From IMG/VR virus record IMGVR_UViG_3300024239_000011, positions 124,001 to 188,000 of that record: a stretch of 64,000 nt of DNA, one strand, 5' to 3'. The notes under the pieces are model-generated. The model was not told the origin of the DNA and did not search any database. It was given only the letters and a program-made list of their open reading frames with translations. The position numbers and the translations under genes are program-made. Every line of letters starts with the position of its first letter. Position 1 is the stretch's first letter. Below are positions 6,790-19,358 of the stretch, piece by piece.

Positions 6790-7378
6790 GTGGTATTGAT
6801 GGCATTACGTGATAAGCAGCAAATTGAAGTCGAAGGCTGTATCGCTTCTATTCGCGAAACTGCGACCGCACTCACTCAGTTTGAGAGCGATAATAAAGAT
6901 ACAGCCCTTTTGGCCGAGCAACTTGGTGACACCCTGAATAAACTGGCTGCGGTGGTAAATATACTCTACCGGGAAGTTCTAACGGTGGGGAATACTATTT
7001 ACGATGTCTAAAAAACTCAGCGAAGAAATCCGTGAATATGTAGAAACATTAGGAATGATCACGGAGGGTGAATATATCCCCAATCGTCCACGCACCCTTC
7101 AAGTCAACATGGATCACTGGGATGCGTTCCCACGCATGATGATCCGATGGCACAATCCATTTGGACCGACCCCGGCTGTTTTCGATAAGGGAATTTTGAA
7201 TTTTTATGACGAACAGTCGTATGAAGACGCCAAGAAAAAACTTCAAACCCTTGGCATTTCCTTTGATGAACTTGATGACGGAATGACGACACATAAAGAC
7301 AAAGAACTTCGGCATGATACGGCTGGACAATTGTCACCGTATCCGAGCAATCGTGACATCTTCGATCATGAGTTCTGA
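6790..7378 (+). other. Two late-promoter-driven hypothetical CDSs (6790-7011, 7004-7378)
   Basis: TAAATA at 6766-6771; overlapping ORFs. Confidence 0.55.
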
Positions 7379-7581
7379 AAGTGCTCACGAATGCGCGTCA
7401 GGAAATTAATCGCCTGCTCATACCCATAGGCGTGGATGCCGGTATGACCTTTAGTGTTGTTGTCATCAAACAGCGCCAGGAAATCGCGATTGGTTGCTGA
7501 CCAATCGATGTCGATAACGCGCTTGCGACAGCCGATTTTGAACCGCCCAAAGTCAGGGATATTTATCAAAATCGCCAAGGT

Positions 7582-7663: not shown

Positions 7664-8323
7664 GTTACCCTATTCTTCACGCGCTCTGATCGGCGTGATA
7701 GTTACTTTTACCGCAATAACCTCGATCCCGTCAAAATTTTCCTTCATCGGGATGGCATCTTCTACTGCATCTTCTCGCAAATCATACACCAGAGATTCGC
7801 TGATACGATGATCCCACCCCGTCATTCCGTTTGCCGAGTAATATCGAAATTTTCGTTTATCGAGTTTCTGACGGATAACGTACTTGTTTGACATGTCCAC
7901 ACCTCATTATGTGTGGATATTTATGTCAAACTATTACTCAGGGTTCCTGATGTAGCCAGATACGCACCCGATCAACGGTTTGCTCTACAAAGCGCGGATC
8001 AGTTTCGATTTTTTGTCGAAGATACGTCTGAAACACCCGGACAGACGGTTTATCTTCACTGTGATCGGGGATGTGAAGTTTCGGGATCACTGAGGGCGGT
8101 TCCGGGGTGGGATTTGATGTTTCGGGGGCTACCTTGATGGCATGTTGTACCGCCCGTTGGATCAACCACTCTTTGATTCGCTTCATCGTTACCCCAAGAA
8201 TGCTCGGATTTTAGGAGAGTATTATGGGAACCTATGCGGTTGTCAAAAAGTTTCGCACGTCCCGAGGCAGTTGGTAGACGTGTTTTGCTAAATACGCATG
8301 TCCCTCTTCCAATCAGGTGGAAC

Positions 8324-8836
8324 ATGCGCAAATCAAAGTACACAAAAGAACTTCTTGAACAACACGTTGCAACGGCAATTTCATACTCGACATTGATCCA
8401 GTCATTTGGGTTAAAACCAACCGGCGGGACGTATGTTTACTTTCAAAAACTGGTACGCCAGCACGAAATCAACGTCGATCATTTTAAAGGTATGGGATGG
8501 GCGAAGGATTTAACCAAAGATAATAATACGACGATCAAAAGAATAGCTGAGCGCAATTCTTATACTGACGAGCAGGTACTTTGTGATAAATCCCCGGCGT
8601 CGATCCGCCCAACCCGTCTCCGTGATCTGATGATCAAGAACGGCATCCCCTATGTTTGCTCAGAGAGCGACTGTGATGTTGGGGCGGAATGGAAAGGGAA
8701 ACCGATCACCCTTCATATCGACCACGTGAACGGCATAAGCAATGATAACCGCCTAGAGAATTTGCGGTTCCTTTGCCCAAATTGCCACCAACAAACACCA
8801 ACATGGGGTCGGCACAAAGAAAAAGAGCCGGGGTGA
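8324..8836 (+). CDS. HNH homing endonuclease
   Basis: LHIDHVNGISNDNRLENLRFLCPNCH. Confidence 0.9.
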   Translation: MRKSKYTKELLEQHVATAISYSTLIQSFGLKPTGGTYVYFQKLVRQHEINVDHFKGMGWAKDLTKDNNTTIKRIAERNSYTDEQVLCDKSPASIRPTRLRDLMIKNGIPYVCSESDCDVGAEWKGKPITLHIDHVNGISNDNRLENLRFLCPNCHQQTPTWGRHKEKEPG

Positions 8837-9387: not shown

Positions 9388-9693
9388 TCATTCGTCCCCG
9401 AGGGTAATCATCGCGACGGTTTCGATACGTGAGGTTTTTCCACTTTGATAGGTTTCTGACGCGGAAAGACCAACAACGTTTTTACATCCATCGTTATTTT
9501 TTACAAGAAAGTAAACACGATCTTCGGTTCCATCTTTGTATTTTACTTGCTTGACCATTAGAGGGCAGCCATTGATGGTAGCAACCGCCACCGCATTTCC
9601 AGTGACAAATGCCTGTTGGTTGGCATCGTCAGAGAATTTCTCACATCCAGACAGCGCCAATACGACACCGCCAACCATCAAAATTTTACGCAT
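9388..9693 (-). CDS. Putative lipoprotein
   Basis: Signal peptide with LSGC lipobox. Confidence 0.65.
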   Translation of the reverse strand: MRKILMVGGVVLALSGCEKFSDDANQQAFVTGNAVAVATINGCPLMVKQVKYKDGTEDRVYFLVKNNDGCKNVVGLSASETYQSGKTSRIETVAMITLGDE

Positions 9694-9734
9694 GGGACAA
9701 CCCTCCGTTTAGGGTTGGATATACCAGTCCAACC

Positions 9735-10169
9735 CTATACCGCGCAACCAACTATTTCATGAATCGCCGCAAGGTAATCCACTTGTTCAGGTTCTTTGAT
9801 CGTTGCTACGACCTGAACAAGGCGATAATCACTAACTCGCAGATCAGTGTCCAGCATTCCGGTACCACATGCTGCAAGGCGGAATGGCGCATTCTCTGTA
9901 ACCATCCCTTGAAGAATTTGACCAGCAGGGGTGTCCAACAGCTTGATCTCTGCCATCAGCGCGTTTCCGTCGAAGAATAGGTTCTCTACGGTATGCGATA
10001 CCTTGTCCATGCTGATGACTAGCGTTCCTTCTGGGAAACCAAGTTGACCCGTTCGAAATGTCTGGGACATATACTCGGTTATTGCCGCTTGCATCATATC
10101 GCGTGGGTAAATGCGCCCGGTAATGGTCGGGGCATCGCAATCAAGAACTTTTTGGGTAATAATTTTCAT
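9735..10169 (-). CDS. T4 gp21-like prohead protease homolog, apparently catalytically dead
   Basis: GRIYP...KVSH...LLDTPAGQIL scaffold; GELxHP replaced by GQLGFP and GVSSRG by RLAACG. Confidence 0.7.
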   Translation of the reverse strand: MKIITQKVLDCDAPTITGRIYPRDMMQAAITEYMSQTFRTGQLGFPEGTLVISMDKVSHTVENLFFDGNALMAEIKLLDTPAGQILQGMVTENAPFRLAACGTGMLDTDLRVSDYRLVQVVATIKEPEQVDYLAAIHEIVGCAV

Positions 10170-10425
10170 GTTTCCTCACACGGGCGCATTGCCCTCATAA
10201 AAACGTTCACGATGACATGCGACCCCTGGTGAAAAGAGATGGTATCTTTTGCCGTTTTTTCCAACTTCGACTCCATAGTCGTAAAACGTCCAGTCCCATC
10301 CATCTCGCGTGTCGAACGTATAATATGCCTTATTGAGTTGGCATGTCAGGATAGCATATGAATATTTTACTTCAGGTGCCACTTGCTTTTGAGGTTCACA
10401 TCCAGCGAGTAACCACATGACACCA

Positions 10426-11058
10426 CTAAGCCACAGAAGTCTCTTCACTTTTCGCCTCCCAATACGTTCCATAACCATGCTGGCGCATATGATCAGCAAG
10501 TTTTTTCATGGATATCTTTGTTGTCCAGTTGACCGGGATCGAGAAACGGTCATCTGACCATTTTTTGCGAACCCAAATTATAGCATCAGTTTCATTCAGG
10601 AAATCCACCCCGGCATACATGTACGAGTATTCCTCATACTTCCAAAAAGTCTTGATCACTTTTTGTTGGAATTTGAACTGATCGCCTTCCAGTAGCTCGT
10701 AATCGTTTAGTCCGGTGATCGGCACGAACGACTCATTTCCCACATGGCAGAGGCGGTCAGACCCGATTTCTCGAACCATCATTTCGCCATTGCCTCGGTT
10801 CTCTTCACAGAAACCCACAACCCATTCATTCAAGGGCATGCTTTGACACAGCACCAAATCGCCTTTTTGAGGCGTGCGATAAGTGGCAAAATGGGTACGC
10901 CGACTGAAGTCAGACGCGAACAGGGTTTCGGTACTTTCCCCGCTCCGTGTCGCTCGCAAGGTCAAGTACAATTGCGTCCCGTACAACCCGCGAATCACGC
11001 TAAGCAGGATGCGTTCACGATCAGTCAATATCGGTGAAACCAACCGCATTAGTGACAA
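10426..11058 (-). CDS. Hypothetical protein
   Basis: 210-aa ORF in a tightly packed run. Confidence 0.6.
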   Translation of the reverse strand: MSLMRLVSPILTDRERILLSVIRGLYGTQLYLTLRATRSGESTETLFASDFSRRTHFATYRTPQKGDLVLCQSMPLNEWVVGFCEENRGNGEMMVREIGSDRLCHVGNESFVPITGLNDYELLEGDQFKFQQKVIKTFWKYEEYSYMYAGVDFLNETDAIIWVRKKWSDDRFSIPVNWTTKISMKKLADHMRQHGYGTYWEAKSEETSVA

Positions 11059-11266
11059 CTCTCAGCGCAATTACCCGTACACGGTTCTGGTACTTCGACA
11101 TTCATCACCACGTTGTGAAGTTCATCCACAGCGTCGTCATGCTGTTCCATGGCGCGAATAAATGCCCCTTGCCAAGCATCACAGTCGCTTGGCGGATTCT
11201 GGTCCAGCCATTCGTGCAGAGCTTTGATATGGGCGGCAAATTTCTCTGCCGCTTCAACCATGACCG

Positions 11267-11794
11267 TCATAGACCAGCCCCCACGATGTCCCGGATCGCC
11301 TGAAGGTGATCAACCGGCTTGGGTTTGTTCTCTCGCTCGAAGGCTTCCATGAACAAAGTGGGATAGGTCTTGGAGTAATGCTTCTGACCCGAGTACAACA
11401 TCGGAAGAAGCGACTTCCCAGTGCCGCCCTGTTGCGACAGGATAAAGGGAGTGTTCAGCTTCATTGCCTGCTCGCGAAGCTTGTCAACCCACTCAGCCAT
11501 CGCGGCATACATCGACTTGGTTTCAGCGCGAGCAGTCTCACTCATACTGAGGCAAGCATCCGGGTCGTAATAGAAAATCTTGTTCGGCATCAGCGCACCC
11601 AATTGGGTCTTCGGCTCACGACTCTTTGCCACGAAAATGTTCATTTCGCCGCGCCGAATACCGCCAGCAAGTTTGTCGATACGGTCAAACCCGGAGACGA
11701 CCCACGGGGTGTCCTTAACCGAATCATTACCTTCAGTAACGTAAATCTCTTCCATCGGGCGAACCCTCCCTAAAACGTCAACCACATTCCCCAT
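11267..11794 (-). CDS. Degenerate DnaB/gp41 helicase-like fragment protein
   Basis: SGFDRIDKLAGGIRRGEMNIFVAKSREPKT (degenerate Walker A) and LREQAMKLNTPFILSQQ (motif H3-like). Confidence 0.55.
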   Translation of the reverse strand: MGNVVDVLGRVRPMEEIYVTEGNDSVKDTPWVVSGFDRIDKLAGGIRRGEMNIFVAKSREPKTQLGALMPNKIFYYDPDACLSMSETARAETKSMYAAMAEWVDKLREQAMKLNTPFILSQQGGTGKSLLPMLYSGQKHYSKTYPTLFMEAFERENKPKPVDHLQAIRDIVGAGL

Positions 11795-12237
11795 TCCATG
11801 TCGGCGGGGTCAATTTTATTCAGCAAACGTTGAACTGCCGGGATGAACTTGTCCTTCGCTTCCTGCGGCATGTCATGAATTTTGCAGAAATTCTTCCCGT
11901 ACTGGCTGATCTCGAACCGGTGCCCAACGATCAGTGCAATGGTTTGACACTGCATGGGATCACCATGCCAAGCTTTCGGGTTGTGAAGGACGGTCGTTTC
12001 GACCCCCATTGCATGTTGGTTCTCGTCTGGGATTAATTCGTATTCAAGATCATGCAGGCTGCGGTTATCTTCGATTTCGCGCCACATAGGGGCGCCACAC
12101 TCGCCGCAGAATTTAGACGGGCTTTCCGGGTGAGTGCATCCACGTTCTTGTCCGTGGTTAAGGTAGGCGTCGTAGATCACGTCAGCAGGTATCTTGTACC
12201 CGACGAAGACGGACGCATGGCATGTGTGTCCCATCAT
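11770..12237 (-). CDS. Hypothetical Zn-ribbon protein
   Basis: KFCGECGAP motif. Confidence 0.55.
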   Translation of the reverse strand: MMGHTCHASVFVGYKIPADVIYDAYLNHGQERGCTHPESPSKFCGECGAPMWREIEDNRSLHDLEYELIPDENQHAMGVETTVLHNPKAWHGDPMQCQTIALIVGHRFEISQYGKNFCKIHDMPQEAKDKFIPAVQRLLNKIDPADMEWGMWLTF

Positions 12238-12371
12238 AACCCCCCAACGATGTCACGAATAGCTTGAAGATAATCAGGTTTGTTCCGCGCCTGGATGAAC
12301 TCTTGAATATCGCCTTCGGTTGGATTGATGAAAAGCTGTGTGTTTGGATACCGAGTTCCAATCCGACGCAT
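12234..12371 (-). CDS. 45-aa protein not in the ORF track (MRRIG...KPDYLQAIRDIVGGL)
   Basis: ATGA overlap with the next gene; shares a C-terminal motif with two neighbours. Confidence 0.6.
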   Translation of the reverse strand: MRRIGTRYPNTQLFINPTEGDIQEFIQARNKPDYLQAIRDIVGGL

Positions 12372-12707
12372 CAACGCACCGAGCTTTCTCGGTAGCCATG
12401 TGTGTTTGGTTTCTACCTACCGTACTTGTCCCGCCGCGCGGTCGAGAGAAGCAGTGCCTATACAGGGTCGGTCAAGAGGTACACAAACCTCTTAATTACT
12501 TTTGAACGACGGTGAAATACGAACCATCCACCCGGTTGCCAAAAGCGTTCAGATGGACTTCAGTATTTCCGTCCTTGAGGATCAACGTCTCAGATTCACC
12601 GTTATCCTCGCTGGTAATCACCACATCATCCTTCAGAAAAGGACGGAGGCTGTTGGCCACATCTTCAAGACGTTCGGCAATGGACATCATGATCCTCGTT
12701 GTATTTG

Positions 12708-12919: not shown

Positions 12920-13555
12920 TTATGTATCAGAGCTTTCCAGTAGCAGCAACAATTTTTTGGCCCGCTTGTAATTTCCCCCTTTCGGGTCTAGTCCAACCTC
13001 AATCAACGCTTGGCGAATGCTATCTGTGCGAGCAAGAGCGGTAATTAAGTCTTGGTCAGGTACCTTAATTCGACCAGTGTTTCTACGTCCCTTAAATGTC
13101 GGTGTTTGGCTATGGCAGTTGGGACACAAAAATCGTAAATTTTCCAAACGATTATCACGTCGATTGCCGTTTATATGGTCGAGTTCGAGAATCAGGGGTT
13201 TGTTATTCCATGACCCGTCCAAACCACATTCAGTACATTTGTATGGTAATAGACGTTCAGTCAAAATCAACTTTTTCAATCGTTCTGTTGTAATCTCAGA
13301 CCCTTCTATAAAAATATTAGACGGCTCTACTTTGCGTTTTACTCTTCCGTCTGATAAAACGGTTTTGTGTTTATTCCAAGGTGTTTGACCTTTGAAATGA
13401 TCATAAGCCATTTTTCCGTCTTCATGCGCCTTGCGTAATCCTGCTGCATTTTTTTCTTTAACAGCAGGGCACGCATTATAGCTAGTTGTACAGCATTGGC
13501 GCCCGTTTCTAAGAACATTTGTTGCTTCATTTCCACAACCATATTCACATAACAT
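12920..13555 (-). CDS. HNH homing endonuclease
   Basis: LELDHINGNRRDNRLENLRFLCPNCHSQT. Confidence 0.92.
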   Translation of the reverse strand: MLCEYGCGNEATNVLRNGRQCCTTSYNACPAVKEKNAAGLRKAHEDGKMAYDHFKGQTPWNKHKTVLSDGRVKRKVEPSNIFIEGSEITTERLKKLILTERLLPYKCTECGLDGSWNNKPLILELDHINGNRRDNRLENLRFLCPNCHSQTPTFKGRRNTGRIKVPDQDLITALARTDSIRQALIEVGLDPKGGNYKRAKKLLLLLESSDT

Positions 13556-18395: not shown

Positions 18396-19358
18396 ATGCG
18401 CATCAAAGAAATCCTCGAAGATACATCCACATCACCATGGTACTTTGTCATTTCCAAGGATGGTATGGCCAAGGTATTCAATGAAGATGATCCCGAATAC
18501 CTGAAGCATATCTGTGATCTGGGCTGGGAAGTTGAATGGGATAGCGCCCGTAGTCCCGAGCAAGGATACCGTTTTGCCCGTGAACATGGATTGAAACCTG
18601 TTGGTCAAAAAGAAAGCCCGCTTGACAATCCGAACTTCCGTAAATGGTTCGCAGGCAGTAAGGTTGTAGACAAGAACGGTAATCCGCTTGTCGCCTACCA
18701 TGGCACGTCCCAGGATTTTGAGGCATTCAGTGTGAAACCCACCAAGAACGTTGGTCGTTATGGTTTCAACCGTATTGGGTTCTGGTTTGATACCGACCCC
18801 ACTACCCCTAATTATTTCGCGGGCGATGATGGCGATAGTATTGAAGGGCGTCAGGGTGGTGGAAACGTTATGCCGTGTTACCTGTCGATCAAACACCCAT
18901 TGGTTATTACCAGTGAGGCTTTAAGCGCACGAATGGAAGCACAGCTTCGTGATCTGTGGGCACAACATAAGGCGCTCTGGCAGAAATACAACACCGAACG
19001 TAAGGCGACCCCCACTTACGATGATAACCTTCATCGAAAATATAGTGCCCTGTCCAAGAAAATCATGGCTGAAATTGAAGATATCAAAGCTCGGCGCGGG
19101 TCGGATTCTTTCTATAAACTCATGAGCCTACTTCCCCATGGACCAAAGACCAAGGATGCCGATGTTGACCAATTTGTGGCTGACGCGAAAGCCGAGGGAT
19201 ATGACGGCATTCTGCTCAAGGATACCCTGGCAGATGACGGCTCCCGTGGTGGGAAGCTGACTGACTGGTGGTTGCCTTTCGACCCCCACCAGATCAAGTC
19301 AGTGTTCAATAAGGGCACGTGGAGTACGGAGACGCCCAAGCTCTCCGAAGGGGCTTAA
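18396..19358 (+). CDS. ADP-ribosyltransferase-like (ART-PolyVal type) late/virion protein
   Basis: FRKWFAGSKVVDKNGNPLVAYHGT, GFWF, GYDGI, FDPHQIKSVFN; late promoter at 18368. Confidence 0.7.
   Translation: MRIKEILEDTSTSPWYFVISKDGMAKVFNEDDPEYLKHICDLGWEVEWDSARSPEQGYRFAREHGLKPVGQKESPLDNPNFRKWFAGSKVVDKNGNPLVAYHGTSQDFEAFSVKPTKNVGRYGFNRIGFWFDTDPTTPNYFAGDDGDSIEGRQGGGNVMPCYLSIKHPLVITSEALSARMEAQLRDLWAQHKALWQKYNTERKATPTYDDNLHRKYSALSKKIMAEIEDIKARRGSDSFYKLMSLLPHGPKTKDADVDQFVADAKAEGYDGILLKDTLADDGSRGGKLTDWWLPFDPHQIKSVFNKGTWSTETPKLSEGA

Follow-up and report, generated by a model that had tools for sequence, protein, structure and literature searches.

Phages of the T4 type load diverse unrelated proteins into the prohead core through short terminal peptides, among them the capsid targeting sequence (CTS) of the internal proteins IPI-III and Alt, which is amphipathic, N-terminal, and removed at (L/I)xE by the prohead protease, whereas gp21 and Alt also have C-terminal propeptides (PMC3012670, PMC9026906, PMC5694885). 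T4 internal proteins are anti-defence proteins that share only a targeting peptide (PMC3012670). Short, much diverged paralogues of the prohead protease that lack the C-terminal region of the real enzyme recur in phiKZ-like giant phages, as in SPN3US gp117, 201phi2-1 gp206, and PhiPA3 gp143 (PMC5694885). Encapsulin cargo-loading peptides, and the C-terminal capsid-targeting tails of the HK97 protease and of scaffold proteins, sit behind a flexible linker and dock cargo to the inner face of an HK97-fold shell. Unrelated replication and late-transcription proteins of T4 and RB69 share a short, hydrophobic, clamp-binding C-terminal tail. Here, we describe a short C-terminal tag, probably helical, on at least 16 otherwise unrelated small proteins of one T4-like giant phage with a 543,035-bp genome, many of which are shrunken, inactive copies of the phage's own core proteins.

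Distribution and conservation of the tag

To test whether the tag is real, we first examined the open reading frames of the analysed window, a 64,000-nucleotide stretch of this genome (Table 1). The initial annotation had noted that unrelated neighbouring proteins share a C-terminal D(Y/H)LxAIxxIVG tag; this observation held, and the tag proved to be more widespread than was noted. Genes A, B, and C end in [DN][YFH]Lxx[IV][RHK]x[IV][IV]G, show no mutual similarity outside the tag, and are joined in the window by a fourth, weaker copy. The 45-residue product of C also stands in the public protein collection (entry P0002). A six-frame HMM search of the whole genome gave 12 hits at E values of 3e-10 to 6e-7 and then nothing until 0.14, and an iterated search gave 16 hits (12 strong and 4 weaker; E 5.7e-4 for the fourth copy in the window) and then nothing until 0.48. 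All hits were 0–4 residues from a stop codon and none was internal. When the 817 called genes were scored with a position matrix, the tags scored 19–32 bits (19.1 bits for the fourth copy), whereas the next best C-terminus scored 8.8 bits and the best internal site 15 bits. Thus, the tag forms a closed set of 16, and chance is excluded.

Table 1. Features of the analysed window (positions in the window unless stated otherwise).
Coordinates	Strand	Feature	Description
9735–10169	-	Gene A	144-aa catalytically dead paralogue of the prohead protease (T4 gp21/Peptidase_S77 type) with the C-terminal tag
9747–9779	-	Tag of A	DYLAAIHEIVG, followed by CAV and the stop codon
11267–11794	-	Gene B	175-aa (or 162-aa from Met14) truncated protein, candidate DnaB_C/RecA fold, degenerate Walker A, with the C-terminal tag
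11279–11311	-	Tag of B	DHLQAIRDIVG, followed by AGL and the stop codon, which overlaps the ATG of the next gene
12234–12371	-	Gene C	45 aa from an ATG start (12234–12374 from a TTG start); little more than a linker plus the tag
12243–12275	-	Tag of C	DYLQAIRDIVG, followed by GL and the stop codon, which overlaps the ATG of the next gene
7366–7578	-	Fourth tagged ORF	70 aa; weaker tag variant NFLTRIREHF, followed by QNS and the stop codon
51933–55112	-	Genuine tail sheath gene	Parent of the tagged sheath-like mini-proteins E and G, which lie outside the window at genome 322753–323037 and 327576–328169
9699–9865		Inverted segment	Carries the 3' end of A, including the tag; inverted in other strains or samples

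To determine whether the conservation resides in protein or DNA, we compared the codons of the tag copies. Pairwise nucleotide identity over the ten tag codons was 0.57, 0.65, and 0.32 at codon positions 1, 2, and 3, only 38% of same-amino-acid codon pairs used the same codon, and Arg and Leu were encoded by five or six different codons across copies. Third codon positions are therefore near random, excluding a DNA-level repeat such as a promoter, recombination site, or mobile cassette end. A strain variant of B (P0012) that is 68% identical overall and has an 11-residue deletion in the linker keeps 17 of 17 tag residues, with 3 synonymous changes. The neighbourhood also varies between strains. 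Gene C is absent from a divergent strain (contig L149), with a joint at 12234|12347, and the segment carrying the 3' end of A is joined at 9698|9865 on opposite strands in sequencing runs X3 and X4, an arrangement also seen in JGI contig L137; no flanking inverted repeat was found.

Searches outside this genome did not recover the tag. None was found in nine related phage records, including complete phages of 607, 457, and 490 kb, whereas the positive control recovered 12 of 12 copies in the phage's own genome. A pattern scan of IMG/VR gave one internal chance hit, a scan of JGI metagenomes gave only the phage's own genome and one internal FtsA-like chance hit, and a scan of 185,000 genomes gave nothing. 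An exhaustive HMMER search over 1.84 billion representative proteins, whose sensitivity is limited to scores of about 39 bits or more, returned only the phage's own proteins and three repeat-protein artefacts. In the related phage G001, the FKLRWG family has a C-terminal domain of about 50 residues rather than a bare tag, and this domain is not attached to copies of core proteins.

Bodies of the tagged proteins

The initial annotation held that A resembles a prohead protease without its catalytic His and Ser and that B carries degenerate DnaB/gp41 motifs; the first claim was confirmed, and the second was supported only as a lead. Gene A matched the phage's own protease, encoded at genome 208647–209282 (BLASTP 4e-16), phrog_207 (E 1.8e-14), and Pfam Peptidase_S77 (E 4.6e-6), the last at 26.7 bits; it is a homologue, just under the curated Pfam cut-off of 27. 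It has F45, A99, and V121 in columns that are invariant or nearly invariant His, Ser, and Asp in 28 real proteases; the His and Ser positions were anchored on PDB 5JBL, whereas the Asp that completes the triad is our own assignment. For B, Pfam DnaB_C gave E 0.17 over residues 33–75 only, phrog_19 gave E 0.039, and the Walker A motif is not intact (AKSREPKT), although ESM Atlas features (0.90, all ten best hits DnaB_C) and structure (TM 0.58–0.64) agree on a DnaB_C/RecA fold.

The pattern of dead copies is wider than the initial annotation reported. At least seven bearers are truncated, diverged copies of core phage proteins, namely the prohead protease (A), portal (D), tail sheath (two copies, E and G), tail tube (L), tail fibre, and, as a lead only, the DnaB/RecA-type ATPase (B), and a truncated capsid-protein paralogue carries a tag-like end. 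The genuine sheath gene matched phrog_10581 at E 4.6e-275, and hhalign of the sheath C-domain profile gave 93.8% (E 1.8e-7) against G and 77.9% (E 1.9e-5) against E. The other nine of the 16 bearers show no likeness to any core protein; PHROG and Pfam scans of the other bearers and their neighbours were uninformative, and an ESM Atlas search with tagged protein H gave nothing.

Possible functions of the tag

We interpret the motif as a portable C-terminal docking peptide of about 11 residues that sits behind a variable linker rich in Pro, Lys, and Glu and most likely forms an amphipathic helix. On a helical wheel, Y2, L3, A5, I6, I9, and V10 form one hydrophobic face, the conserved D1 and R/H/K7 sit at its rims, and the variable positions 4 and 8 face away. 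An AF2 model of A was of low confidence (pLDDT 53), with moderate confidence for the body only; DSSP assigned helix to residues 131–140 at low pLDDT, and the placement of the tag in this model is unreliable. Our analysis establishes that the tag is selected at the protein level, is strictly C-terminal, and is specific to this lineage, whereas binding to one partner shared by all bearers, and any destination or activity that follows from it, are inferred. That the tag docks to a common partner is somewhat more likely than not. The initial annotation's interpretation, a portable docking, localisation, or degron helix fused to decoys, was thus partly supported: the docking or localisation helix fits the protein-level conservation, the strict C-terminal position, the variable linker, and the amphipathic pattern, but the proposal that the fusions absorb host pattern-recognition defences or poison competing phages has no direct support here.

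The most likely destination, which we propose only tentatively, is the assembling prohead core, by analogy with the T4 targeting sequences and the C-terminal propeptides of gp21-type proteases and Alt; in this view, the bearers would be built into, or act inside, the prohead and possibly be delivered with the DNA. The phage has a gp23-type capsid protein, an S77 protease, a scaffold, a portal, and a sheath, and A is a paralogue of a prohead-core enzyme in which the usual C-terminal region, inferred in the literature to target the protease to the prohead, is replaced by the tag. MAFFT placed the tag of A on the conserved AYPxPIYE/HLMNxRGG segment of real proteases, which contains I-x-E, with Y132, E138, and G141 in invariant columns, and BLAST gave the same placement; because the tag HMM does not score real proteases, derivation of the tag from this segment after the PSAP motif remains only a hint. 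The tag has the same hydrophobic, x, x, hydrophobic, hydrophobic, x, acidic spacing as the phage's N-terminal MRIxEIIxE leaders. Asp at the cleavage position of T4 IPIII blocks processing but still allows targeting (PMC9026906). Tagged gene L has its own late-type promoter, tagged genes D and D2 follow the portal gene, and for 15 of 16 tagged genes the nearest recognisable upstream promoter on the same strand is of the late type, although timing is inferred from promoter motifs only, as none of the RNA runs examined held the sequence. Sigma-70 promoters were not enriched near the window genes.

Other results weigh against this destination. No binding partner was identified; a complex prediction with the real protease, the body of A, and the tag peptide gave no answer, and a presence/absence comparison with G001, with which only 120 of 817 genes are shared, was too distant to pick a receptor. 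The N-terminal leader family comprises about 30 proteins, including an ART-PolyVal and a glucosaminidase, that look like the regular capsid-targeted cargo, and thus a second head-targeting signal is not needed a priori. Only 4 of 16 tags have I-x-E. An apparent likeness of the scaffold C-terminus to the tag was not borne out by the position matrix, and several bodies derive from tail or replication proteins, which have no obvious business in a head. A separate possibility, mimicry of a host C-terminal peptide such as the FtsZ tail or the SspB XB motif, had no support from the genome scan.

The best-surviving alternative, although unlikely, is that the mini-proteins are anti-defence decoys that imitate the folds recognised by bacterial pattern-recognition receptors (Avs/STAND, DSR2, and CapRel-type sensors), with the tag tying them, or the sensors they capture, to one phage effector such as a protease or a sequestering hub. 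The parents of the tagged bodies (portal, tail tube, helicase/RecA-type ATPase, and capsid protein) are among the 13 conserved phage proteins shown to be sensed by Avs families, with the sheath named as a likely further target (PMC13581612); the bodies keep the most conserved motifs of their parents, and the genes lie in variable accessory regions that differ between strains. This reading is compatible with delivery through the head. However, truncated targets that keep the core fold can still activate Avs sensors (PMC13581612), which cuts both ways and could make carrying them harmful, nine bearers have no core-protein likeness, and no effector for the tag is known; ClpP is encoded by this phage but also by G001, which lacks the tag. 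A broader and slightly less likely version is a tagged toolkit of miniature, inactive copies of the capsid protein, portal, protease, tube, sheath, fibre, and helicase that would act as mimics against host receptors or competing phages, with the helix plugging every mimic into one shared machine for packaging and delivery or for sequestration or destruction of what they capture. If true, this would be a modular counter-defence architecture not described so far.

It is less likely that the mini-proteins are assembly modulators or poison subunits, which would bind the polymerising surfaces of their parents and pace the phage's own assembly, or block assembly and replication of co-infecting related phages, with the tag providing a common handling factor. 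The retained segments are conserved core motifs of the sheath C-terminal domain, the portal, and the tube, and the phiKZ-like protease paralogues offer a precedent of the same size (PMC5694885), but such proteins would risk poisoning the phage's own assembly, and this model does not explain bearers without a core-protein body. Also doubtful is a degron for timed destruction by phage ClpP with a host unfoldase or by the prohead protease. The tag is strictly C-terminal like known degrons and resembles an I-x-[D/E] protease site, but the extreme C-terminal residues that matter in ssrA-type degrons vary in length and sequence (CAV, AGL, GL, GV, KY, none, and others), and no phage ClpX was seen next to ClpP, where the neighbour is a metallopeptidase/vWA protein with a MoxR-type ATPase. 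Self-association of the helices into one mixed complex would suit the wide conserved hydrophobic face and the lack of an identified receptor, but is improbable because ten residues are short for a stable bundle and the conserved Asp and Arg suggest a specific groove. Finally, although several tagged ORFs overlap the start of the next gene (ATGA) and a late-promoter-like TAAATA overlaps the stop codon of tagged gene F, a DNA or RNA element is ruled out by the codon analysis, and a ribosome-arrest peptide controlling the downstream gene is very unlikely because the bearers are proteins of 45–197 residues with recognisable folds, unlike leader peptides.

Comparison with described terminal peptides

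Short targeting peptides are the means by which T4-type phages, encapsulins, and microcompartments load cargo, and they are useful engineering handles. The tag described here is new and sharply defined, comes from an uncultured phage of a subsurface site (study P1), and marks out a coherent set of otherwise anonymous genes, many of which are miniature dead copies of core proteins that overlap with the targets sensed by Avs receptors. If its partner is the prohead core, then the tag would be a second, C-terminal cargo route in T4-like heads; if not, it points to an unknown hub in giant-phage biology. In either case, the tag peptide could serve directly as bait.

As with the T4 CTS, a short terminal peptide with the same amphipathic spacing is the only thing shared by otherwise unrelated proteins of a T4-type phage, and the genes lie in variable regions, here among tRNA genes. 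In contrast to the CTS, the tag is C-terminal, has mostly Asp, Gln, or Ala at the would-be cleavage position, and coexists with an N-terminal leader family that does fit the CTS description; targeting of the tag to the head is by analogy only. Gene A is close in size to the phiKZ-like protease paralogues (136–145 residues), but those are of the S80 type and keep the Ser and Asp, whereas A is of the S77 type, has lost His, Ser, and Asp, and carries a tag shared with 15 other proteins. Encapsulin peptides likewise are short C-terminal sequences that serve diverse cargo, but they use a different consensus, with Gly/Ser/Leu-rich motifs, and docking of the present tag to this capsid protein would be conjecture. 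The clamp-binding tails of T4 and RB69 share with the tag a C-terminal hydrophobic peptide on unrelated proteins, but this phage's own DNA polymerase ends in LDTDLFSF, the classical clamp-binding type, which is unlike the tag.

A closed set of C-terminally tagged proteins in a giant T4-like phage

The virus contig of which the window forms bases 124,001-188,000 is 543,035 bp long with 48.7% G+C, is rated complete by CheckV, and is the same record as metagenome contig Ga0247724_1000001. It is a giant relative of T4, with a gp23-type major capsid protein (Pfam Gp23, E 4.6e-81), an S77 prohead protease followed by a coiled-coil scaffold, a portal (phrog_213, E 2.5e-116), a 1059-aa tail sheath, a tail tube, and a family-B DNA polymerase split into two ORFs about 7 kb apart, with tagged gene K between them. 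The window alone holds 27 tRNA genes, many of them duplicated isoacceptors (Leu, Pro, Gln), interspersed with HNH endonuclease genes. The phage occurs in subsurface and soil metagenomes of one study, and no RNA run holds it.

The initial annotation reported a shared C-terminal tag on three neighboring ORFs, and this observation held: genes A, B, and C exist on the minus strand and end as described. To determine how widely the tag occurs in the genome, we built an HMM from the tags and searched all 12,742 stop-to-stop ORFs. This search found 12 ORFs at E 3e-10 to 6e-7, followed by a gap to E 0.14. Clustering of C-terminal 22-mers and inspection of neighboring genes added four weaker variants, and the iterated HMM then returned 16 ORFs, followed by a gap to E 0.48. 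The consensus is [DN][YFH]Lxx[IVAT][RHK]x[IV][IVAC], usually followed by Gly, and always lies 0-4 residues from the stop codon, whereas the residues before the tag are variable and rich in Pro, Lys, and Glu. With a position matrix, tagged C-termini scored 19-32 bits, the next best C-terminus scored 8.8 bits, and the best of about 166,000 internal positions scored 15 bits.

Coordinates of the tagged ORFs and of other features discussed in the text
Feature	Reference	Position	Strand	Remark
Tagged gene L	genome	41840-42247		
Tagged ORF	genome	131366-131578		
Tagged gene A	genome	133735-134169	-	
Tagged gene B	genome	135267-135794	-	
Tagged gene C	genome	136234-136374	-	
Tagged gene D2	genome	233154-233354		
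Tagged gene D	genome	233351-233818		
Tagged gene E	genome	322753-323037		
Tagged gene F	genome	323550-323762		
Tagged gene G	genome	327576-328169		
Tagged gene H	genome	329414-329962		
Tagged gene I	genome	363377-363790		
Tagged gene I2	genome	363787-364113		
Tagged gene J	genome	364097-364462		
Tagged gene X	genome	370658-370861		
Tagged gene K	genome	385860 to about 386090		
Genuine prohead protease	genome	208647-209282		211 aa
4988-aa ORF	genome	286666-301632		
CheY-like receiver gene	genome	323789-324172		next to tagged gene F
Three truncated capsid-protein paralogues	genome	336968-339407	-	254, 298, and 260 aa; outside the window; middle one ends in a tag-like ...SAIDQIKEIVGKF
Cluster with ClpP, an HExxH/vWA protein with a MoxR-type ATPase, and a GGDEF-EAL protein	genome	366894-375245		outside the window
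Split family-B DNA polymerase	genome	381447-382415 and 389554-390099	-	
FKLRWG-domain protein (example)	genome	461181-461768		
tRNA genes	window	7582-48508	-	27 genes
HNH endonuclease gene	window	8234-8836	+	
Predicted lipoprotein gene	window	9388-9693	-	directly downstream of A
Segment inverted in other samples	window	9699-9865		167 bp
Central and linker region of B, diverged and shorter in a co-occurring strain	window	11320-11559		
Segment concerned in the absence of gene C from that strain	window	12234-12347		
HNH endonuclease gene	window	12920-13555	-	late-promoter-like motif 33 nt upstream of the start
Gene for an N-terminal leader protein (example)	window	18396-19358	+	

Conservation, strain variation, and distribution of the tag

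To test if the tag is maintained as protein or as nucleic acid, we compared codons across the 16 copies. Pairwise nucleotide identity in the ten core codons was 0.57, 0.65, and 0.32 for codon positions 1, 2, and 3, respectively, and only 38% of codon pairs that encode the same residue were the same codon. Arg is written AGA, CGT, CGG, CGC, and CGA, and Leu is written CTT, CTG, CTC, CTA, TTA, and TTG. This result excludes a DNA or RNA element. A co-occurring divergent strain (contigs L149-L151) carries a homologue of B, P0012, that is 68% identical overall and only 30-65% identical in 20-residue blocks across its central and C-terminal body. P0012 lacks 11 linker residues but has 17 of 17 identical residues through the tag, with three synonymous changes, although the divergence is mosaic. 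The same strain lacks gene C and carries a different HNH endonuclease next to the tRNA genes. This accessory region varies between strains. The segment that encodes the last 43 or so residues of A, tag included, is inverted in other samples (runs X3 and X4 and JGI contig L137), which gives A a different C-terminus there. No flanking inverted repeats were found, and the inversion is a strain variant or a recurrent rearrangement. The small predicted lipoprotein encoded downstream of A (MRKILMVGGVVLALSGC...) has weak PHROG hits, including one to a Cor-type superinfection exclusion protein (E 0.017).

The tag was absent from nine related phage records whose protease or sheath is 65-70% identical to that of this phage, including complete genomes of 607, 457, and 490 kb, whereas the same search recovered 12 of 12 copies in the phage's own genome. 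Degenerate DNA patterns found only chance internal hits in IMG/VR and in JGI metagenomes and nothing in 185,579 prokaryote genomes. An exhaustive HMMER search of 1.84 billion cluster representatives, which sees only strong copies scoring about 39 bits or more, returned only six of this phage's own proteins and three repeat-protein artefacts. The relative IMGVR_UViG_3300046665_000548 (G001; 607,744 bp), which lacks the tag, has about 30-43 small proteins that end in a C-terminal domain of about 50 residues (W..NC.G ... F.F.D..DA..FKLRWG), and a few members of this family also occur in the phage studied here.

Relationship of the tagged proteins to core phage proteins

Seven of the 16 bearers resemble core phage proteins. 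Gene A encodes a homologue of the prohead protease (Pfam S77 E 4.6e-6; phrog_207 E 1.8e-14; BLASTP 4e-16 against the genuine protease of this phage). Aligned with 28 proteases, A has Phe, Ala, and Val where they have invariant His, Ser, and Asp, with the His and Ser positions anchored on the T4 gp21 structure 5JBL, and it lacks the last 45 or so residues of the real enzymes. B was called DnaB_C/RecA-like by ESM Atlas features and structure; Pfam and PHROG gave weak hits to the same family, and the Walker A motif is degenerate. L resembles the tail tube protein (BLASTP 2e-4 within the genome; Smith-Waterman Z score of 9.8 against shuffles). G and E resemble the conserved C-terminal domain of the tail sheath, as hhalign against a 27-sequence profile gave 93.8% (E 1.8e-7) for G and 77.9% (E 1.9e-5) for E, and there were also matches to the sheath of G001 and weak PHROG sheath hits. 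D, which lies immediately downstream of the portal gene, resembles a conserved portal segment (hhalign 62.6%, E 7e-5; Z score 7), and X carries an N-terminal motif of the phage's fibre and structural proteins (phmmer 2.7e-4; Z score 9). The other nine bearers had no recognizable relatives. In addition, three truncated paralogues of the major capsid protein lie in tandem, the first of which has a Smith-Waterman Z score of 20 against the capsid protein, whereas the middle one (Z 8.6) ends in a tag-like ...IKEIVGKF. The tag defines a set of at least 16 proteins, many of them miniature dead copies of core phage proteins.

Inferred function of the tag and known precedents

The conserved residues of the tag fall on one face of a helix. 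On a wheel with 100 degrees per residue, Y2, L3, A5, I6, I9, and V10 span about 160 degrees, D1 and R7 flank that face, and the variable positions 4 and 8 point away. The AF2 model of A makes residues 131-140 a helix, though with low confidence. A helix behind a flexible linker, on unrelated bodies and under purifying selection, is the anatomy of a docking peptide. Our analysis establishes that the tag is a genuine, lineage-specific, protein-level C-terminal signal; that it docks its bearers to one shared partner is an inference, which we consider more likely than not, and that this partner is the prohead core is a further and only tentative inference, although it is the most likely destination.

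Some evidence favors a prohead destination. In A, the tag replaces the C-terminal region that is thought to target such proteases to the prohead, and BLAST and MAFFT place the tag of A on the conserved AYPxPIYE segment of real proteases, which contains an I-x-E site. Gene L has its own late-type promoter, D and D2 follow the portal gene, and for 15 of 16 tagged genes the nearest upstream same-strand promoter is of the late type. This late-promoter-like motif (nTAAATA, often GCTAAATAC) is about 10-fold enriched upstream of genes and peaks 20-40 nt before the start codons of about 130 genes, including fibre, sheath, and leader-bearing genes. Other evidence points away from the prohead. About 30 proteins of this phage already carry an N-terminal MRIxEIIxE leader (M-[RK]-[IL]-x-E-[IL]-[IL]-x-E) with a proper I/L-x-E site, and most sit behind late-type promoters. 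These proteins include an ART-PolyVal ADP-ribosyltransferase (E 5.8e-21) and a glucosaminidase, which are typical injected cargo, and the leader looks like the phage's N-terminal capsid targeting sequence with a protease site; G001 has an analogous MNMRDLIxLxE family of 24. Moreover, the tag HMM does not score real proteases, several bodies come from tail or replication proteins, and the one complex prediction (protease, body of A, and tag peptide) gave no answer.

Decoy, assembly-modulator, degron, and self-association readings are the live rivals. Avs families sense the capsid protein, portal, tail tube, helicase/RecA-type ATPase, and other core proteins, and the sheath has been named as a likely further target (PMC13581612). 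The parents of the tagged mini-proteins overlap with this list, and the proposal in the initial annotation that the bearers are decoys that might absorb host pattern-recognition defences is reasonable but remains a hypothesis. Avs activation by truncated targets that keep the core fold has also been reported (PMC13581612), so a mimic could just as well be a liability. The interpretation offered with the initial annotation is partly supported: a portable docking helix fits the anatomy of the tag, whereas a decoy role has no direct support here. With respect to specific partners, no ClpX accompanies the phage ClpP, and ClpP is also present in the tag-less G001. The tag is not the sliding-clamp motif, because the C-terminal part of the phage DNA polymerase ends in LDTDLFSF, a classical clamp-binding tail.

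Diverged protease paralogues of the same size as A that lack the C-terminal region occur in phiKZ-like giant phages, where their function is unknown (PMC5694885). The closest precedent for the tag itself is the T4 capsid targeting sequence. T4 internal proteins share nothing but a short peptide that gives them affinity for the prohead core; in IPIII, residues 4 and 7 matter for targeting and residues 8 and 10 for cleavage, and Asp at position 10 blocks cleavage but not targeting. In addition, gp21 and Alt have C-terminal propeptides (PMC3012670, PMC9026906, PMC5694885).
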